64,000 nucleotides of DNA from Oopsacas minuta (GCA_024704765.1 JAKMXF010000088.1:801029-865028); one strand, 5' to 3'; positions 18,569-33,290 are shown, counted from the stretch's first letter. Made by a program: numbers and translations. Notes: generated by a model not told the origin, from the sequence alone.

Positions 18569-18720
18569 TACACAATTACATAAGCTGACGTATATACGTA
18601 TCAGCTATTATAGTAATTAGAGCTAATAGCCTATAACACAAACGTAAGGATATTTATAGCTATAAAGTGTTATAATAATATATTACACATATACTAAGGT
18701 TTGCTACAGATATATTATTA

Positions 18721-18852
18721 TTGCTTTTACACGAGTATGTGTATGACGATATACAGGCTGTTACAAGACCTGAGTACATAGATATGCAGCCTGTTATTAA
18801 TATAGAATATGAGGATATACAGCAGACAGGATACAAGAGTATAGGACCTGAA
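18721..18852 (+). pseudogene. Orphan exon-like fragment encoding a receptor tail with three tyrosines at 11-residue spacing
   Basis: YDDI(18742)-x7-YIDM(18775)-x7-YEDI(18808), followed by a gtaagt donor at 18853. Resembles the DDR-A tail (YVDMQP). No upstream ectodomain exons fit before the INPP5K start. Confidence 0.45.
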
Positions 18853-19185
18853 GTAAGTCAATTTAGCATATATCTGTCAAGTATTCAGGACGTACGGAAG
18901 CGAGGGAGGATACTTCCATAGATTCCGAAGGTCCTATGGATATTTATAATTGCATATAGTAGAATTCAGATAAGACGTAATTCGGTTAATACGCGCTATA
19001 TTTTGTCTTAATCCGAATTCTAATGTATAATTATTATTATAGGAAGTGATAGAGCAGGTTAACAACACTCAAGGACAGAGTTATTATGAGATAAACTAAA
19101 AAGAAAGGAAATATTAGTAATACTTTAGAAATAATATTAACATTATATTCTGTAGTGTATATTAGTAATAATTATATTGATTAGC

Positions 19186-19415: not shown

Positions 19416-21197
19416 ATGCAGCTGTTAGAAATACAGCGATTATTGTTACTGTTGTTGTTATCAGGATTTGTGACGTCATCTTCACAACAATGTAACACTC
19501 CTATCCTAAGAGATATTATAGACGGGGGTTCTGGAGAAGGAGACTTCATCAACAGTCTAGGATCCAATAGAGTGGTACCAGTTCTCAACCAATCAGAAGC
19601 TTTGGAGATAAGAGTCAGTGGGTTTAATTTTCCAATATTCAGACTAAACACAAACTATGACATTAATGCTATAGATATACAGTTTGGAAGTGAAGGAACA
19701 TCGTGTAGTGACAATGGTATAGCTATAGAAATGGAGACAATTACGATAGGGAATAGTGATCCTGTTGATTCTCCGGGTACAGCAGTACAAATAGGCTATG
19801 ATGATAATGATATAATGAACTTAATAGAGTTAGGAGATCCTAATGAAGGAAGAATAATAAGATTAAGATTTAATGCAGCTAGAGGGAGGTATATCAAATA
19901 TGGAGTAAGTTGATTAAATAGCTATGACGTAGTATTGCATTCTAATAAACAATTTATAGATAACAACAACAAATCCGCCAGGTAATGATAGCAATGTAGT
20001 TGAACTCTGTCTACGTACAGAATTCTACGGCTGTACAAGCGGAGGAATAACAGGATTAACATTCCTACAATACAACCTGATAGAACCTACAGTATATACA
20101 GACTCTATATACACAGGAATAACCTCTAAGGGATATATGTCAGGAGGAGAGGGACTACTGAATGATGGATCTATAGGTCAGTAACACATACAGATTATAT
20201 AACTGTATTAACTATTATGTTACAGGTACAAGCCCTATAGCAGACAATACTCAATGGATAGGATGGGATAATCCTGATATGGAAAATCCTGAAGTTCTGT
20301 TTCTGTTCAGTAGAGATGTGAATATTCGTAACATAAGTATATTCTACTGGGGAGAGACTAGTAGTGATATTACAGTACAGATTAGCAGTGTTAGAGGGAT
20401 AGAGACTGTGGTAGATGAGATTACACAAAATGAAGGATCTGTATACAGGAGGATATATGTATTTGATGGAGTTACTACTGGATTGATAAAACTAAACTTT
20501 ATAGGAATAAGCACAGTGCTGCTGACTGAAATAGAGATTATAGAACCTTTGGAGGGAATGAATCTATTGGGACCTACTCTAGATACCAGTAGGTTCATTG
20601 ATACTACTACAGCAGCAACAGGTTAGTTGTATATAATAATTTAGAGAGAAGTTATGTATTCATGGTATGTATACAGCAGGAATAACGACACCACAACCAC
20701 CAACACCAACAACACCAACAACACCAACAACATCAACAACAGGAATAATATCAACATCAAGTATAGCAACAACAAAATCAAATTCTAACAACCAGACTAT
20801 CTCTCAACCAGTAACAAAAATTCCAACAATAACAACAACAACAACACCAGTTAACACAAACTCATATAGTATATATATTATAATATTAGTAGTTATATGT
20901 ATACTGATATCTGTTGGTATAATACCTGTAGTTATAGTATGTGCATTCCTTTGCTATAAGGCTGGATACAAGGTAGGACAGAGAGACAAGAGTGATTATG
21001 TGGATATGCAACCAGATCCTAAACACGATTACGAACAAATCAAACCAGAAACAGAGCCTCAGTACCAGAATTTATCTAGTAGTGTAAGTTAAGAATTACA
21101 GTATAATCTATGTTCTGTATAATAATATACTTATATTAATTAGGTGAGAGAACATACAGATAACATACAGGACGGTAGTTATTATGTACTCAAGTAA
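19416..21197 (+). CDS. DDR-like receptor A: signal peptide, discoidin/DS-like ectodomain, Thr-rich stalk, TM, short ITAM-like tail; no kinase
   Basis: Spliced exons give [34 protein letters not shown] and [14 protein letters not shown] (DDR has CLRVELYGC, YGGLGQLADG, YVGW..VEMEFEFDR). TM IYIIILVVICILISVGIIPVVIVCAFLC. Tail YVDM-x7-YEQI-x7-YQNL. Stop at 21092 if unspliced or 21197 if spliced. Confidence 0.82.
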
Positions 21198-21654: not shown

Positions 21655-24600
21655 ATGCAGCTGTTTGGAATAGAAATACTGTTGTTGTTAACATTGGCTG
21701 TGACGTCATCTTCACAACAATGTAACACTCCTATCCTAAGAGATATTATAGACGGGGGTTCTGGAGAAGGAGACTTCATCAACAGTCTAGGATCCAATAG
21801 AGTGGTACCAGTTCTCAACCAATCAGAAGCTTTGGAGATAAGAGTCAATGGGTTTAATTTTCCAATATTCAGACTAAACACAAACTATGACATTAATGCT
21901 ATAGATATACAGTTTGGAAGTGAAGGAACATCGTGTAGTGACAATGGTATAGCTATAGAAATGGAGACAATTACGATAGGGAATAGTGATCCTGTTGATT
22001 CTCCGGGTACAGCAGTACAAATAGGCTATGATGATAATGATATAATGAACTTAATAGAGTTAGGAGATCCTAATGAAGGAAGAATAATAAGATTAAGATT
22101 TAATGCAGCTAGAGGGAGGTATATCAAATATGGAGTAAGTTGATTAAATAGCTATGACGTAGTATTGCATTCTAATAAACAATTTATAGATAACAACAAC
22201 AAATCCGCCAGGTAATGATAGCAATGTAGTTGAACTCTGTCTACGTACAGAATTCTACGGCTGTACAAGCGGAGGAATAACAGGATTAACATTCCTACAA
22301 TACAACCTGATAGAACCTACAGTATATACAGACTCTATATACACAGGAATAACCTCTAAGGGATATATGTCAGGAGGAGAGGGACTACTGAATGATGGAT
22401 CTATAGGTCAGTAACACATACAGATTATATAACTGTATTAACTATTATGTTACAGGTACAAGCCCTATAGCAGACAATACTCAATGGATAGGATGGGATA
22501 ATCCTGATATGGAAAATCCTGAAGTTCTGTTTCTGTTCAGTAGAGATGTGAATATTCGTAACATAAGTATATTCTACTGGGGAGAGACTAGTAGTGATAT
22601 TACAGTACAGATTAGCAGTGTTAGAGGGATAGAGACTGTGGTAGATGAGATTACACAAAATGAAGGATCTGTATACAGGAGGATATATGTATTTGATGGA
22701 ATTACTACTGGATTGATAAAACTAAACTTTATAGGAATAAGCACAGTGCTGCTGACTGAAATAGAGATTATAGAACCTTTGGAGGGAATGAATCTATTGG
22801 GACCTACTCTAGATACCAGTAGGTTCATTGATACTACTACAGCAGCAACAGGTTAGTTGTATATAATAATTTAGAGAGAAGTTATGTATTCATGGTATGT
22901 ATACAGCAGGAATAACGACACCACAACCACCAACACCAACAACACCAACAACACTAACAACAGGAATAATATCAACATCAAGTATAGCAACAACAAAATC
23001 AAATTCTAACAACCAGACTATCTCTCAACCAGTAACAACAATTCCAACAATAACAACAACAACAATGCCTCCAGGATCTAGCTCTATAATAATAGGAGTA
23101 GTGATAGCATTAGTACTAATCGTATTTCTGATACTACTACTGGTAGTATTAATAGTAGTGTTTCTACTAGTCAGGAGGAGAAGGAATAACAGAGAGAAGG
23201 AGGGATATGTACCCACTAAGAAGAACTCTGGGTCAGCTGTCCGGCAGAACAGTAAGAGCAATGAGATGGGATTATATGAACCTATAGCTAAAGAGAATAT
23301 CAGTGAGCCTTACTATGAAGATCCTGATAAAGTAGTGAAGACTAGAGAAGAGAAAGGTTACTCTAACCTTATAGAGGAGGATATCAACACCTCTACATCT
23401 AAGAATAACGGAGCTGTTAGTACGGCTAATCAGTGGTACGAGGGAGGTGATAATTATGATATATACGCTAAACCCGAGGTAAGCATTATCGGATATAAGC
23501 ACCATCCTCTATACACACGATTCTCATGTATTCCTGTATATAGGATGTGGCAATCTACGCAAAAATAGACAAGCAGAAGTCCGTTAAGAAGCATCCGGAT
23601 AAGATATACGAAGAGCCTCAATATGATTTATCTATTGTACAGGATATAGATCCTGTTCCTTATAGAGATTCATTTGATTCCATCAGCAGCTTCCTGCCCC
23701 CCTCTAGCATATACGAGGCTCCTGCTCAGCTGTTAGAGGAAGAGGGACCCAGACACTTCTCAGCTGGTGACGTCAGAGAGGAGAGCTTCCTTGGCAACGG
23801 ACAGTTCGGTGAAGTTATGCTAGCTACTCTCCTTACAGTATCACCTCGGGAAATGGGGTTAGGACCCTCTGATAAGAAGGGAGTGAAAGTAGCGATCAAG
23901 AAATTAATGTCAGATCCATCTCCTCAGACGAAACAGGATTTCGGTAAGGAAATAAAGTTCATGGCTCGACTGAATCATCCTAATGTAGTCCGACTGCTGG
24001 GGGTTAGTCTGGAAACTCCTAGCCAATCATTCCTAGTAATGGAATACGTAGAGAACACAGATATGGCAAAGTTTCTGAAGGAATGTATATACGTGGATAC
24101 TAAGGGTAGTAACCTTAGAGGCAGACAGGTATGTGTACAATAATTATCTAGAGAGTTATGTGTAGTGACGTCATTATACTGTAGGTTAACCAGGACTGTA
24201 TGGTATACATGGGTCAGCAGATAGCCTCAGGAATGGAGTATCTATCTAATAGGAATTACATACACAGAGATCTGTCAGCTAGGAATTGTCTGGTGGGAAG
24301 TAACTATACTGTTAAGGTGTCAGACTTTGGAATGAGTCAGAATTTGTATTCTAGCGAATACTTCAAGATTACTGGTAAAGCTACACTACCCATAAGGTAA
24401 GTGGATCAGCTGATTATTCCTACTGTAGATAATACATGTGCTGTTAGATGGATGGCTAATGAGACGTTCTACGGACGATTCACTGTAAAATCTGATGTCT
24501 ATGCATTCGGAGTAACTCTATGGGAAATAATGGGTAAGGGAGAGACAAGGCCTTATGACGAGATGACTGACCAGGAGTTGATACGTGACGTAATCGGTAA

Positions 24601-24960: not shown

Positions 24961-26893
24961 ATGAAAGCATTCTTATTGTCTATAATGGTTGCTATGTGTA
25001 TAGCAGAGGAGTGCACTACTCCTCTATTTCGTGACGTAATATCACCGGATGCATCAAAGACTCGCTTTACACTAGATAACATTGGAGATATAGGATTTGT
25101 AACAGGACTACCTGTGATTAACAGTACTCACCCGTTAGTTATACGTATACGAGAGTTTACTACAGCTATATTGCTGCTTGCTGGGAGAGATAACTACTCT
25201 CCTCATTACTGGATAACAGCTGTAGATCTACAGCAGGGAGCTGCTGGGGTTAACTGTGATAGTAGTGGAGTAATAGAGGAAATGAGTTTAGAGTTTAAAG
25301 AGGCTTATGGGTACACAGCTCTGGACACACCCTTTAGAGAGGGGATAGACGCTACGAACAGTAATCCTACTCTTAACCTCAAGAAGATAGGGGGTTACTC
25401 AGGGGGGAGAGTAGTTAGACTCAGATTCCAACCCGTGGGAATAGACGGAATACGAATTAAGGTAACTTATAACTTATCCATGGTTCTAATAATATAATAA
25501 TATGTCTGCAGGTTCTGAGTATCGACCCACTGACTAGCAGTATAACTACAGAAGTATGTCTGAGAATAGAGGTGTACGGATGTGAGAAGACTAGTAACAG
25601 TCCTCCTGCAATATACAGCAGTCCCTTGTACCAATATAACTTGATAGAACCATCAGCTAACTCATATACAGATCCAACTTATACAGGAATAAGGTCAGGA
25701 GGATATCTGTCAGGGGGAGAGGGGATATTAACTGATGACGTAATAGGTATGCTGTATTAAATACCTGTGTGTATATATGGTTACTATGGTGTGTTAGGTA
25801 GGAATGCAGAGGATTATCCAAGGGAATGGCTGGGGTGGCAGAGAGAATATAGCAGTGAGATAGACGTGTTGTTTCTGTTTAGGAAAACACAACAAATAAA
25901 CAGAATTAATATATACTATTGGGAAGATAGCACAGCTGATATAGGAACAGCTGAGTACAGAGATCAAGACAATAATATTATTAATTTCGATAACACAAAC
26001 AAGTCAACAATAACAAATCATATAAGACTACTGAGTTGTTACAGAGATACGGAAACGTTAGTTAGTTATGTAAAACTGATGATATCCTATGCTACGGACA
26101 AGAATACAGTGATAATCACAGAAGTACAAATTGTGCGAGAGAGAGATGGATACTCTAGCAACGTAATTACAGGAAGGAATGTGATAGAGCTGAATTACAC
26201 ACAAACAACCGTATCCAATTATAACACAACAAAATCACCAAATAGGACAACAGAGATTGCAACAATACCAAAGAATACTACCATATTTATGTCAACAAAT
26301 AGAACAACAAATAGAACAACAAATAGGACAACAAATACAACAACAAATAGGACAACAAATACAACAACAAATAGGACAACAAATACAACAAGTAAGACAA
26401 CAACAACAATATTTAACACTTCATATTCTACTGATATAACCACCTCCATTACGTCATCACATACTACAGCTAGTCCATCTCCTACACAACTCAGTAATCT
26501 TATATTAGTTACAGCTATATCCAGCTGTTTGGTACTCTCTGTATGTACTAATGGTATTTTACTGGTACTGCTAGGGGTATGTTGCTGGAGGTATTTGAGT
26601 AGGAGAGGGTCCCTGATCGTACAGGGGAGAGAGTACATACCTGAGGACGAGGGTACCTACCTACCTATGAGCTCATTGGAGCTACCCAGCTATCTTAATA
26701 TACTAGACACAGATAAACAACAACAAACACCTGACACACCGGATAACCACTACTACTCAAGGCTAGATGTAAGTTCTGTACATTCCTTATACAGTATGTG
26801 GTTGCTAGGGATATTATCTATTTATTCATGTAGGCTTTCAAGGAGAAAGATAGTCCTGGAGATTTCAGGAAATATTACCAATTCAGGAGCTAG
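24961..26893 (+). CDS. DDR-like receptor C: ectodomain, N-glycan sequon stalk, TM, Tyr-motif tail; no kinase
   Basis: Signal peptide; [10 protein letters not shown]; EWLGW..EIDVLFLFRK; (NRTT/NTTT)n stalk; TM; YLPM-x7-YLNI; last exon AFKEKDSPGDFRKYYQFRS* ending at 26893. Confidence 0.8.
26290..26400 (+). repeat. Coding 12/24-bp tandem repeat encoding NRTT/NTTT
   Basis: aataggacaacaaatacaacaaca units inside DDR-C. Confidence 0.85.
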
Positions 26894-28755: not shown

Positions 28756-30823
28756 CCTACAATCGCTACTACAATGACAGATACAACCATATTTAGCCAA
28801 ACTACTAATGAATCAATAGCTAGTACATTTACTAGTGACGTCACAGGATCAGCACCATCCGATGGAGGAATAAAACAAGAGTTAATAATAGGACTAATAT
28901 TCGTGATAATAATAATAATAATAATCGTCATAATAGTTATCATACTGGTGTCAGTATTTTACTACATGAAGAGCAAGAGCAAGGGACTAGGAGATCTCAA
29001 TTGTACCAGCACAGGAGGATTGTTTAAGAAGGATGTAGAGAGAGGTAGTGGAGGAATAAAGAGTAAATTCCAGAAATATAACTTTATAAAAGCACGGAGG
29101 ACAGAGTACGAGCCTGTTCCTGAAAAGTTAGACATATCACCACCATTCCATAAGTTCGAACTTACAGAAGAGATGTCCTCTGCTGATAAAGATAGCTTCA
29201 CTGACGCTAATGAAGATCTCAACATATACGCACCTGTATCCGTTAGTTAATTAATTACTTATCATAGCAGATAATATTTTCGTTATTTCTATAGGAAATA
29301 AGTGGCATATATGCTACTGTGAATAAAGGGAAGAAGGATAAGATATACGAAGAACCTCTATTCGACCTCTCCCTCCCCTCAACCCCCCTGGACGGCGACC
29401 AGTCAGAGGGACATGGGCTACAACCCCTGAGTAGCATTTACGAGGTGCCGGATCTCCTGTCTAAGGAGGAGGGACCTATCACTCTCACATGGAAGGACAT
29501 AGAAGAGGTAATATTAACGCGAGTGATTATTAATTATAAAGTAATTTGATAGATTAAAAGTCCAAGTAATCTTACAATAAGTATTAGGCGGGCATACGCA
29601 TGCACGAGACAATTACAGAGTTCATTAAAGGCAGACTTAAGTAATTTGAGAGTATCTTTAAAGTTATGCACCTGGTGTTATATTAAATTTTAATAGCCTA
29701 ATTAGGAATATGTAATTATTCAGTTTCAATAATAGATAATAACTTGTGACAAATATATTGCTTGTATACACAAATAATAATTAATAATAAGAATAACCTT
29801 AGTAGAATTTGATACATGTGGGGTGTACTCTTGTAGAGAGATAAACTTGGCAACGGACAGTTCGGAGAGGTATGTCTGGCATCACTCATCAATTACTCAG
29901 CCAAAGAGCTAGGGTTAGGAGCATCGGAGAAGAAAGGAGTAGAGATAGCGGTCAAGAAACTGCCCGCTAATTCTACCCAGCAAAGCAAGGACAACTTCAG
30001 TAACGAGATAAAATTCATGGCTCGATTGAACCATCCTAACGTTATAAAGCTGATAGGTGTGTGTCTTAATGATTTAGCACTAGGAAGGTGTATAGCTATG
30101 GAGTACATGATTAACGGAGACCTGGCTCAGTTCCTGAAAGAATCTGACTATGTAGACAGCATAGGAGCTAATCTAAGAATACAAGAGGTATGCTACTCTA
30201 TTTGTTGTATAGTGTAGTGACATCATTATACTGTAGGTTAACCAAGACTGTATGGTATACATGGGTCAGCAGATAGCCTCAGGAATGGAGTATCTATCTA
30301 ATAGGAATTACATACACAGAGATCTGTCAGCTAGGAATTGTCTGGTGGGAAGTAACTATACTGTTAAGGTAGCAGACTTTGGAATGAGTCAGAATTTGTA
30401 TTCTGGCGAATACTTTAAGATTACTGGCAGAGCTACACTACCCATAAGGTAACTATACCATCGTGTTAATGGCATGTGATAATTATCATTGTATTGTATA
30501 GGTGGATGTCTAATGAAAGTTTCTACGGTAAGTTCACTATAAAGACAGATGTGTGGGCGTTTGGAGTTACACTTTGGGAAATATTCACTAAGTGCGAGAA
30601 GAAGCCTTATGAAGGTATGTCCGACCACGAGCTGATTCAAGACGTACTAGCTAATAAGCTGAATAGGATCAAATTAGATAGGCCTGACTATGCGTCGGAG
30701 GAGGGATGGGAACTAATCACCCGCTGTACTCAGATGGACCCAGACAACAGACCAACATTTGATGTTATTAGAAGGGAGTTGGAGGATATGTGCAAGTTCC
30801 AGATCGAAGAGATCAAAATTTGA
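27245..30823 (+). CDS. DDR: DDR-like receptor tyrosine kinase D (full length)
   Basis: Signal peptide; [10 protein letters not shown]; EWVGW; long Thr/Ser stalk; [32 protein letters not shown]. Kinase motifs [33 protein letters not shown] and [15 protein letters not shown]. Confidence 0.92.
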
Positions 30824-31206: not shown

Positions 31207-33290
31207 ATGATGCGAATAATATGTTTATTACTGATCTCTGTTGTATCTGTGTACACACAGAACAACATCAGAATACTTAGAGACGTTATTGCTCCTGATG
31301 ACGTAAGGACTGCTAACCTTTTTAGTATGCTAGGCATTAACGCTAGTCAGTCAGAGCTAGAAGGTATACCTTATATTAACAGCGATATACAATGGTTGGT
31401 ACATCTTGAAGAAACTGGGATAGGTTTTAATCCTAGATTCGTGTTGGAACTGTTTAATACTGAAGAATCTCCACATTACCAAATAATAGCGATAGAAATT
31501 ATGAGTAGCATTTATGACGGTGCGTGCGGACTGGAGGAAGACGATCTAGCTATGATATCTAGGCTAGAAGTACAGATAGGATATGATGACGTATTCAGGT
31601 GAATAATATATAAACATAACATATTATGAATTGAGTAATTGAATTAGTTTATGTATTTTAGTGACGTCAATACTACGAGCTACCTAACAGAAGGATTCTT
31701 GGATATGGAGCTCCTGGGTCTGACTGATACAAACAATTATATAAGATTTAGGATACCACCGATGAATGGAGATGAAATCAGATTTGTAGTAAGCTTTCAT
31801 TAATATTTTGCATAACAATACTGTGTTATCGTTGCTATGTAGCTAGAGGATACTAATCCCAGTTTCCAGGCAGGCTCCACCAACCTCTGTTTGCAATTTG
31901 AATTTATAGGCCTAGATTTGAATGCCGGGACTGAGCTACCCCCGGGACCTCTCAGTCTCTTGCAATACAATATGCAGGAGCCTACGTTCTCATACACGAT
32001 GATAGATCCGTATGATGACGTCATGTATAACGGAGCTAGAGAGATGCTGTATACTGGAGCAAGAGGCAAACTGACTGACGGAATAATCGGTAAGTACACT
32101 GGAATATTTTTAGATAAGATAATTTAAATCTTGTACAATCAGGCACAGATCCAGATGTAGTGGAAGAATGGGTAGGATTTGATGATTTGGCTGGCCTGCA
32201 GTTATTCTTCGATGAGATTTATTCTGTGAAGGAAATCAGAGTATACTACTGGAGCGATGAAGTGAACGGAGCAGCAGAGCCCATGGGAGATGCTAGAAAC
32301 AGGGATGGAAATAGGATAATGAGGTTTCAATTCACTACGTATGTGTACGATGCTAGTGTACCACAATTAATGGTTTATGCTGGAGAAGCGGATAGCCCGG
32401 TAGATTTGGATTATGTTCTGCTGCGGTTACGAACACCTGAAGCTTCTGTGTTAATCTCAGAAGTATCAGTTCTACGGGAGGATGCTGCAGGTAGGCTAGT
32501 TGATGTTTCTACTGGATTTACACAGAGTCGAATCTCTTTTGTACCCGAAATATCAGCTGATTCGGCAACTACGATGACTAGTACTAACACAAGGTTACCC
32601 CCTAGTCCACAAGTTACTCTTATATCCTCTGCGGTAATATATGGAGCTATAGGGATTGTCAGCTGTTTGTTCTTAGTGATTGCATCAATGTGCATAATAT
32701 TCGTAATTATATTTTGTGTAATTAGAACACGCGTTAAGAAGGAAATTATCCGTATACAGGTACAGCACTCTCCGGTTAGAAGAAAATCCTCTAGCAGATA
32801 CGAAGGGTTGACACTGAATGGAGAGGGTAACTACGCTGAGGTTGAGAATGTGTACGCACAGGTAGACAGGACTCTACCCCTCCCTCCCATACCAGGAGAG
32901 GAGACCAAATCCAAACAACTGGTAAAGGATGACTCTTATATTGAGATGGAAAGATCGCCATCTTACAAAACTAATGCAAACGGACTGAAGATAGACACCC
33001 GTCAGACTAGCAAGCTAGTCACTATGAGAACTCTATCAGAGGACGATTACGCACCAGTAACACCCCCCTCTGCCTCTATCGATGCGAAAGGACCCCCTAA
33101 GAGAGTGCTCTCCGACCCATACGTAGTAGTTACCCCTCCTCCAGCTTCTAATGAATTCAAACTAACTGGAATAGAGGAGAACCAGGAACCTGTGGATGCT
33201 GACAGGCAGAATCCTTCCCTAGCGCATGGAATTCCATCAATATCGAATGAGTATACACCCATGGGAACTAAAGATTCTCCAGTTATGTAA
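31207..33290 (+). CDS. DDR-like receptor E: ectodomain, TM, long Tyr-motif tail; no kinase
   Basis: Signal peptide; LCLQFEFIG; YNGAREMLYTGARGKLTDGIIG; EEWVGF; TM; tail SRYEGL-x7-YAEV, YAQV, YIEM, YAPV, YVVV, YTPM. The ORF stops at 33290 and the next gene is convergent. Confidence 0.78.

Follow-up and report, generated by a model that had tools for sequence, protein, structure and literature searches.

The 64,000-nucleotide window of the glass sponge Oopsacas minuta analysed here (JAKMXF010000088.1:801029-865028; one strand, with positions counted from its first letter) carries, from 19.4 to 33.3 kb on its + strand, five co-oriented genes of a single receptor family. Of these genes, which we term A, B, C, D and E in their order along the strand, B and D encode a kinase, and A, C and E are kinase-less, with no kinase exons before the next gene. 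We propose, with a probability that we put at roughly 55%, that the cytoplasmic tails of A, C and E provide SH2-docking sites on kinase-less partners of kinases resembling the discoidin domain receptors DDR1 and DDR2, and that a PI3K-type site is common to all three. An earlier note on this DNA had drawn attention to tyrosines in these tails that are spaced as in the ITAM (immunoreceptor tyrosine-based activation motif), and had suggested that discoidin-type receptors are here coupled to ITAM-like signalling. We find that the weight is carried by the conservation of the tail motifs across sponge assemblies, and not by their spacing.

Tyrosine motifs in the tails of the kinase-less receptors

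The tail of A contains the motif YVDM-x7-YEQI-x7-YQNL (20997..21074, + strand), with tyrosine codons (TAT or TAC) at 20997, 21030 and 21063, so that neighbouring tyrosines are 11 residues apart. It lies C-terminal to a transmembrane segment (20865..20954), which is seen as a hydrophobic stretch both in the open reading frame (ORF) 20667-21092 and in the annotated A protein (P0008). The stalk, transmembrane segment and tail are encoded by the penultimate coding exon (20677..21083), whose 5' border was read from the sequence together with P0008, and whose 3' end, at the donor GT of 21084, comes from a joint in RNA-derived contigs. These contigs cover the tail exon and splice 21083 to 21144 with GT..AG ends, as in P0008; hence the A tail continues beyond an apparent stop, a TAA at 21090 that is intronic and lies inside the GTAAGT donor, for 17 further residues up to 21197. 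The last coding exon (21144..21197), supported by the same RNA joint and by P0008, encodes VREHTDNIQDGSYYVLK and then a stop, and the C-terminus as a whole reads YQNLSSS followed by VREHTDNIQDGSYYVLK, which is exactly that of P0008. The sequencing run in question (X2) was taken as RNA-derived because its depth is far greater over exons than over introns and its GT..AG joints match the annotated protein, and not from its record. RNA-based joints cover A and B only, from a comparison of the reads with 5,901 letters of DNA; for C, E and the further member F (below), the 3' ends were read from the sequence. The full-length proteins used were P0001 and P0008.

The tails of C and E likewise have their motifs on the + strand, C-terminal to a hydrophobic transmembrane stretch. 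C contains YLPM-x7-YLNI (26658..26702; tyrosine codons at 26658 and 26691, 11 residues apart), followed by a distal motif, HYYSRLDVSS (26748..26777). E contains YEGL-x7-YAEV-x3-YAQV (32799..32864; tyrosine codons at 32799 and 32832), a YIEM (32937..32948) and a C-terminal YTPM (33252..33263). All seven tyrosine codons to which the earlier note had pointed, and the 11-residue pairs that they form, were confirmed at these positions in A, C and E. The motif YxxM is common to A (YVDM), C (YLPM) and E (YIEM and YTPM) and is absent from the juxtamembrane regions of B and D and from the tail of F.

The contrast drawn earlier between the kinase-less and the kinase-bearing members holds in part. The pair is indeed present in A, C and E, but not in every kinase-less member, as the sixth member of the family, F, is kinase-less and has YNNN-x6-YGLK in its tail without any YxxL/I pair. 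Its gene (L039:5888-8354, G000:C22, minus strand) encodes a short tail devoid of YxxL/I and YxxM, and adjoins a gene with many FN3-like repeats. Conversely, neither B nor D has a pair at 11 residues, but both have juxtamembrane tyrosines at neighbouring distances: B has YEPI-x8-YYED (23275..23322, + strand), without YxxM and with its YEPI kept in two other assemblies (S2 and S3, below), and D has YNFI-x6-YEPV (29077..29118, + strand), a pair whose YNFI the S3 orthologue does not conserve.

Conservation of the motifs across assemblies

The ORF of E recovered six exon-level proteins at 37-43% identity, and these led to syntenic clusters in four sponge assemblies of the ENA database, namely S2 (ERZ25072730), S3 (ERZ25071281), S4 (ERZ20067936) and S5 (ERZ25069837). 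A-type genes are present in two copies each in S3 and S5, where their tails read NSYVDMKP..RHDYET[VA]D.VTDSQYH[NAT]L and then stop. Over the five gene copies of the three assemblies (O. minuta, S3 and S5) the consensus is YVDM-x7-YE(Q/T)(I/V/A)-x7-Y(Q/H)xL. Between O. minuta and S3/S5, each of the three tyrosines is invariant, as are VDM.P, HDYE and the last +3 leucine (pattern YVDM.P...HDYE......QY..L), and the motif block is free of indels, with about half of the remaining positions differing. The third motif was also considered as a Grb2-type YxN site; its orthologues read YHAL and YHTL, only the +3 leucine being invariant, and it is better described as a YxxL site. The duplication that yielded the second A-type gene of S3 also copied a fragment of the adjacent Exo_endo_phos2 phosphatase gene (L044:7363-7842).

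The C-type motif takes the form YLPM-x7-YLNI in O. minuta, YVPM-x7-YHNI in S2, YVPM-x7-YHIL in S4, YTPM-x7-FDNV in S3 and YTPM-x7-HHVL in S5. G.Y.PM, the distal HYY..[LI][DE]VS and the 11-residue register are invariant in all five assemblies, and the second tyrosine, replaced by phenylalanine in S3 and by histidine in S5, is apparently dispensable in that one lineage. In the E-type tail, three tyrosines preceding a PLPLPPxP stretch are kept in 7/7 sequences at about 40% identity (O. minuta and P0002-P0007), with a first gap of 10 or 11 residues (spacer x6 or x7). The first +3 residue is phenylalanine in all six orthologue sequences and not in O. minuta, so that the orthologues pair YxxF with YxEM or YxEI where O. 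minuta has YEGL and YAEV. We therefore reject a reading of SRYEGL of E as an immunoreceptor tyrosine-based inhibitory motif (ITIM): the consensus fits in O. minuta only, since the six orthologue sequences have phenylalanine at +3 and most of them proline, threonine or alanine at -2. The YIEM further along the tail is shared by P0001, P0002 and P0004-P0007, P0003 having YMEM and the second copy of S4 YTEM, and the C-terminal YTPM corresponds to YVSM or YVTM in the orthologues.

Thus, the expectation that the spacing would be conserved in orthologues is borne out for the register of A and C, but not for the second tyrosine of C, which is lost in S3 and S5, or for the first gap of E. More generally, the tails are about half substituted between the assemblies and yet keep their tyrosines and the residues at +3, and indels occur elsewhere in the tails but not in the motif blocks. 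The conserved YxxM set comprises YVDM (with YIDM in the relic tail described below), Y[LVT]PM, YIEM with its variants YMEM and YTEM, and Y[VT][SPT]M. Among the features that the tails of A, C and E have in common, YxxM is the most conserved; in vertebrates, pYxxM is the preference of the SH2 domains of PI3K p85, and YxxM is no half-site of an ITAM.

A fourth copy of the A-type pattern, which had been missed in the earlier note, lies upstream of A (motif block 18742-18819). This relic tail exon (18697..18852, + strand) encodes YDDI-x7-YIDM-x7-YEDI, is transcribed, and is spliced from 18852 to a last mini-exon at 19043..19099 (+ strand), which encodes EVIEQVNNTQGQSYYEIN and a stop (ending in SYYEIN) and is homologous to the last exon of A; the two-exon layout thus mirrors the two last exons of A. 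The relic sits between a phosphatase gene and A, with stops upstream and an open frame, and has neither an ATG nor a transmembrane exon. As RNA contigs run on from it to just short of the start of A, it is probably the remnant of a tail, serving today as the 5' leader of A. Both the A tail and the relic tail read as 11-residue repeats of the form (D/E)Y-x-x-(M/I)-(Q/K)-P, and such an internal repeat would be a simple origin for the tyrosine period of A.

A further kinase-less gene heads the S2 cluster (L041:6895-8594). It copies part of the B-type kinase gene beside it, at 92% DNA identity, and retains the B-type transmembrane and juxtamembrane regions (YNPI-x8-YYDL), ending soon after a YANV. 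Hence, kinase-less copies arise repeatedly in this receptor cluster.

Spacing and composition relative to chance

When each tail was shuffled, a bare Y-x10-Y was obtained with P values of 0.10 for A, 0.35 for C and 0.25 for E. The bare 11-residue spacing is therefore within chance given the tyrosine content, and spacing alone proves nothing; set against background, as the earlier note had advised, it is no commoner than in shuffled tails, and we rejected it as a statistical signal. The requirement of a hydrophobic residue at +3 of both tyrosines gives lower values (1e-4 for A, 0.018 for C and 0.012 for E), for a pattern that was chosen post hoc and that partly reflects a general enrichment of YxxPhi, i.e. 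tyrosine with a hydrophobic residue at +3 (P of 0.006 for A and <1e-4 for E in shuffles). The loose form of the pair pattern has nine further matches in other + strand frames of the window. For the count of YxxM, the shuffles give P values of 0.11 (A), 0.09 (C) and 0.009 (E), which combine to about 0.005 by Fisher's method, calculated by hand, and 4/6 of the methionines across the three tails are located at the +3 position of a tyrosine.

A shared ectodomain on a kinase-bearing and a kinase-less receptor

The ectodomain block of A (19447..20844, + strand) shows 98.7% DNA identity, introns included, to positions 21677-23065 of B, and this identity ends within the stalk, shortly ahead of the transmembrane segment. 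In S3, identity between the A-type and the B-type gene is 96.4% over 1313 bp and reaches the same boundary, and between species the ectodomains are about half identical, as judged by eye only. Since the A and B ectodomains are near-identical within a species and the A tail is orthologous between species, the ectodomain is homogenised within each species by concerted evolution, with two distinct cytoplasmic parts being maintained. We consider this pattern the strongest indirect argument that the function of the A tail would be distinct from that of B and that the same ligand would serve both.

Same-sample DNA contigs depart from the reference at 20885, at the end of the A stalk, and return to it at 22839, with 255 unrelated letters at each of the two points. 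These breaks could represent another haplotype or, at the A/B repeat, a structural variant; alternatively, the threonine-rich stalk could have affected the assembly.

In the mechanism that we favour, the tails of A, C and E would act as disordered docking platforms, whose conserved and mostly acid-flanked YxxPhi motifs would become SH2 sites once phosphorylated. The likeliest source of this phosphorylation is the twin with a kinase, encoded by the neighbouring paralogue. Because the ectodomains of A and B are almost identical, the two receptors ought to encounter one ligand in common and might form pairs, and B could then phosphorylate A in trans. The 11-residue register of A may additionally let a tandem-SH2 protein of the p85-, Syk- or SHP2-like kind bridge two neighbouring phosphotyrosines.

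Candidate SH2 readers in the genome

The earlier note had called for a search for Syk and SHP2 homologues, and both are present, along with a p85-like protein, among the 65 matches of an SH2 census of the genome; the Syk-like and SHP2-like genes were compared exon by exon. The Syk/ZAP-70-like gene on contig C133 has several SH2 domains, which match Syk first (6e-25 and 1.4e-23, with the next family at about 1e-11), and kinase pieces spread over about 10 kb that include a Syk-like C-lobe, and it looks intact. The SHP2-like gene (C309) has tandem SH2 domains followed by a PTP domain. The p85-like ORF (L034:2549-3781, on C343) contains two SH2 domains and matches human p85 alpha over the nSH2-iSH2 region with an e-value of 1.7e-40. 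A complex prediction of this ORF with residues 458-520 of the A tail returned a score of 0.02, which gives no verdict and is evidence neither way. A locus on C33 was dropped as a Syk candidate, its SH2 domain being Src/Frk-like. Sponge Syk-like proteins have already been reported (PMC9486129); a literature search found no paper on docking tails of this kind in sponge DDR-like receptors.

Some other architectures were also noted. An 830-residue ORF with Spondin_N and TIL repeats (L033:5819-8311; G000:C133:536818-539310) shares the strand of the Syk-like gene and separates its first kinase exon from the later ones, and a minus-strand gene precedes its kinase C-lobe. Both have the look of genes nested in large introns, which would be unusual for this compact genome. 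On C151, a single 632-residue ORF (L035:1580-3478 of G000) combines a caspase domain (Peptidase_C14) with three SH2 matches and DUF7145, and such a fusion of a caspase with SH2 domains would be out of the ordinary.

Alternative explanations

The A tail comes closest to a true ITAM-Syk module, in which the sponge Syk-like kinase would use its tandem SH2 domains to bind doubly phosphorylated pairs and the kinase-less receptors would be activating partners. Its YEQI-x7-YQNL is an exact YxxI-x7-YxxL with an aspartate or glutamate upstream, its three-tyrosine spacing and last +3 leucine are invariant in all five gene copies, the C register is kept in 5/5 assemblies, and an apparently intact Syk-like gene is at hand. 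There is precedent in the sponge Syk-like proteins cited above and in the ITAMs predicted in the cnidarian Alr proteins (PMC9546547). However, the first motif of both A and C has methionine at +3, the middle motif of A varies between I, V and A at that position, the second tyrosine of C is F or H in 2/5 assemblies, the orthologues of E show YxxF together with a gap that is either 10 or 11, F has no pair at all, and the bare spacing is within chance, with the internal 11-residue repeat sufficing to explain the period. We regard the module as unlikely on balance: it is possible for A, and as a property of C and E it is unsupported. The earlier suggestion of ITAM-like signalling survives to the same extent, in that A fits the consensus and conserves the spacing, and C and E depart from it across assemblies. 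We are equally doubtful of its extension to a paired-receptor system, in which a DDR-like kinase receptor and its kinase-less twin would share their ectodomain by gene conversion and the three-tyrosine array would be an ITAM-type module read by Syk.

YxxPhi in the short tails of single-pass proteins is also the classic sorting signal, and the motifs might be bound by the mu2 subunit of the clathrin adaptor AP-2 for endocytosis of decoy receptors, and not be phosphotyrosine sites. The strong YxxPhi enrichment in A and E would agree with this, and kinase-less copies that share the ectodomain of a kinase receptor could serve as ligand sinks. However, the position-specific conservation exceeds what sorting would need, in that +3 is methionine in one motif and leucine in a second and that the tyrosine is directly preceded by acidic residues, several motifs per tail are conserved together, and E keeps the PLPLPPxP stretch typical of SH3 ligands; we therefore consider this improbable. 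Little probability likewise attaches to a neutral origin, whereby tyrosine-rich tails made of short repeats would yield Y-x10-Y with no function in either spacing or motifs. The shuffle P values of 0.10-0.35 for the bare spacing, the nine loose matches in other frames and the repeat-like appearance of the A and relic tails are what it would predict, whereas conservation of the tyrosines and their +3 residues in indel-free blocks, within tails that are about half substituted and carry indels elsewhere, runs counter to it.

SH2 docking on kinase-less partners of the DDR-like kinases, with YxxM as the common site, is thus the reading that we prefer, and several points weigh against it. F has no docking-type motifs. 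The orthologues come from four other assemblies only, of which S3 and S5 are mutually close, and neither S2 nor S4 showed an A-type tail at the syntenic position. The seven-residue spacer of C is conserved as well (S-[SP]-[LI]-x-[LV]-P-[ST]), and hence the block may be a single longer motif of another kind. The SH2 specificities on which we draw are those of vertebrates and may differ in sponges.

The receptor family and its locus

In a profile search with first exons, the whole 61-Mb assembly yielded the five genes of the window and F on contig C22, and the same profile recovered 15 cluster representatives among 1.84 billion proteins; the ectodomain family is therefore, by this measure, very narrow. 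The last-exon ORF of E is 100% identical to the NCBI protein LOD99_15426 (P0001, 637 residues). A word-based protein search with the last-exon ORF of C gave no match, its own gene included, the threonine-rich stalk having probably consumed the search words. This stalk contains a 12-bp tandem repeat (TNRT units; window positions 26269-26412), and the C stalk of S5 (L047:3075-4420) is enlarged by many longer repeat units, so that stalk length is highly variable.

Among solved structures the kinase exon of B matches DDR1/DDR2 best (1e-13, against 1e-10 for PTK7/ROS), and Pfam identifies PK_Tyr_Ser-Thr, the assignment of a DDR-type kinase covering B and D only. Exon-level Pfam scans of the ectodomain gave zero matches above threshold, and a borderline match to the DDR1-2 DS-like domain (26.6 bits, with a cut-off of 27) came from P0008, the A protein in its full length; for the N-terminal domain there is no Pfam discoidin match in either the exon-level scans or P0008. 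An AlphaFold model of this domain, of medium confidence (pLDDT, the predicted local distance difference test score, of 67), matches the folds of CBM32, discoidin and factor V/VIII C-type and no others, each time weakly (E from 4e-3 to 0.1). 'DDR-like' is thus a fair label, and the view that these are discoidin-type receptors is reasonably supported by the kinase, the borderline DS-like match and the predicted fold.

A phosphatase gene lies upstream of the cluster in O. minuta and in all four ENA assemblies, and a HAD-like gene lies downstream of E in both the window and S3. The receptor cluster is small and restricted to glass sponges.

Relationship to known systems and implications

The sponge tails resemble ITAM-bearing proteins (FcR gamma, Ig-alpha/beta, DAP12, CD3 and Drosophila Draper) in being the tails of kinase-less single-pass proteins, with a YxxI-x7-YxxL and acidic residues upstream in A, and in the presence of a Syk-family gene in the same genome. 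The ITAM spacer of 6-8 residues is matched by x7 in A (twice), C and E and by x6 or x7 in the E orthologues. Of the half-sites, which should be YxxL/I, YEQI and YQNL of A fit, its orthologues have YETV or YETA with YH[NAT]L, and YLPM of C fails; both tyrosines of the pair are kept in orthologues of A (five copies) and of E, but not of C. The A array further differs in having three tyrosines, with YVDM as the first and a variable +3 residue in the middle, C and E are off consensus across species, the receptor is DDR-like and not of the Ig or EGF-repeat type, and the likely kinase would be a receptor paralogue and not a Src-family kinase. Hydractinia Alr, whose ITAMs and ITIMs were predicted by scanning tails within one species (PMC9546547), is likewise a set of clustered receptor genes in a non-bilaterian, with ITAM-like tails and with Syk and SHP homologues present. 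Its ectodomains are of the Ig/Fn3 kind, in contrast to those of the sponge receptors, whose motifs were compared across assemblies.

Other parallels are found in receptor tyrosine kinases. The kinase insert of PDGFR-beta contains Y740MDM-x7-Y751VPM, which is bound by PI3K p85; the 11-residue spacing and YxxM are the same, the C orthologues even carry YVPM, and the sponge p85-like protein has two SH2 domains, but the sponge pairs have methionine at +3 of one tyrosine only and the site is on a kinase-less protein. ErbB3 is kinase-impaired, has multiple YxxM motifs and is phosphorylated by its partner ErbB2. It thus offers a likeness for a YxxM tail on a receptor that is unable to phosphorylate itself and is encoded beside a kinase-active paralogue; unlike ErbB3, the sponge proteins have no kinase domain at all, A and B share a near-identical ectodomain via concerted evolution, and the heterodimer is putative. 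The combination of neighbouring genes, near-identical ectodomains homogenised within species and different signalling parts recalls the paired receptors KIR, Ly49 and SIRP, although in the sponge one partner has a full tyrosine kinase and no ITIM partner was seen. DDR1/DDR2 themselves are the closest relatives of the sponge kinase, and the borderline DS-like match and the discoidin/CBM32-like N-terminal model extend the likeness. DDR1d/e are kinase-less splice forms of DDR1, whereas in the sponge each kinase-less form is encoded by a separate gene and has its own tail, in a tiny ectodomain family whose N-terminal domain has no Pfam discoidin match.

Phosphotyrosine signalling, with its kinases, phosphatases and SH2 domains, expanded at the origin of animals, and to our knowledge very few links from a receptor to an SH2 protein are known in sponges. 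The conserved tail motifs, the kinase-bearing twin and the presence of all three candidate tandem-SH2 readers in one genome make this cluster a concrete test case. It bears on whether tandem SH2 domains read the spacing of motifs in early-branching animals, and on whether receptor paralogues that lack a kinase serve as docking partners in the manner of ErbB3. If the tails are PI3K sites, this would be a more ordinary and yet useful annotation; if Syk reads them, the cluster would bear on the origin of ITAM signalling, placing an ITAM-Syk module on a matrix-type receptor at the base of the animals.

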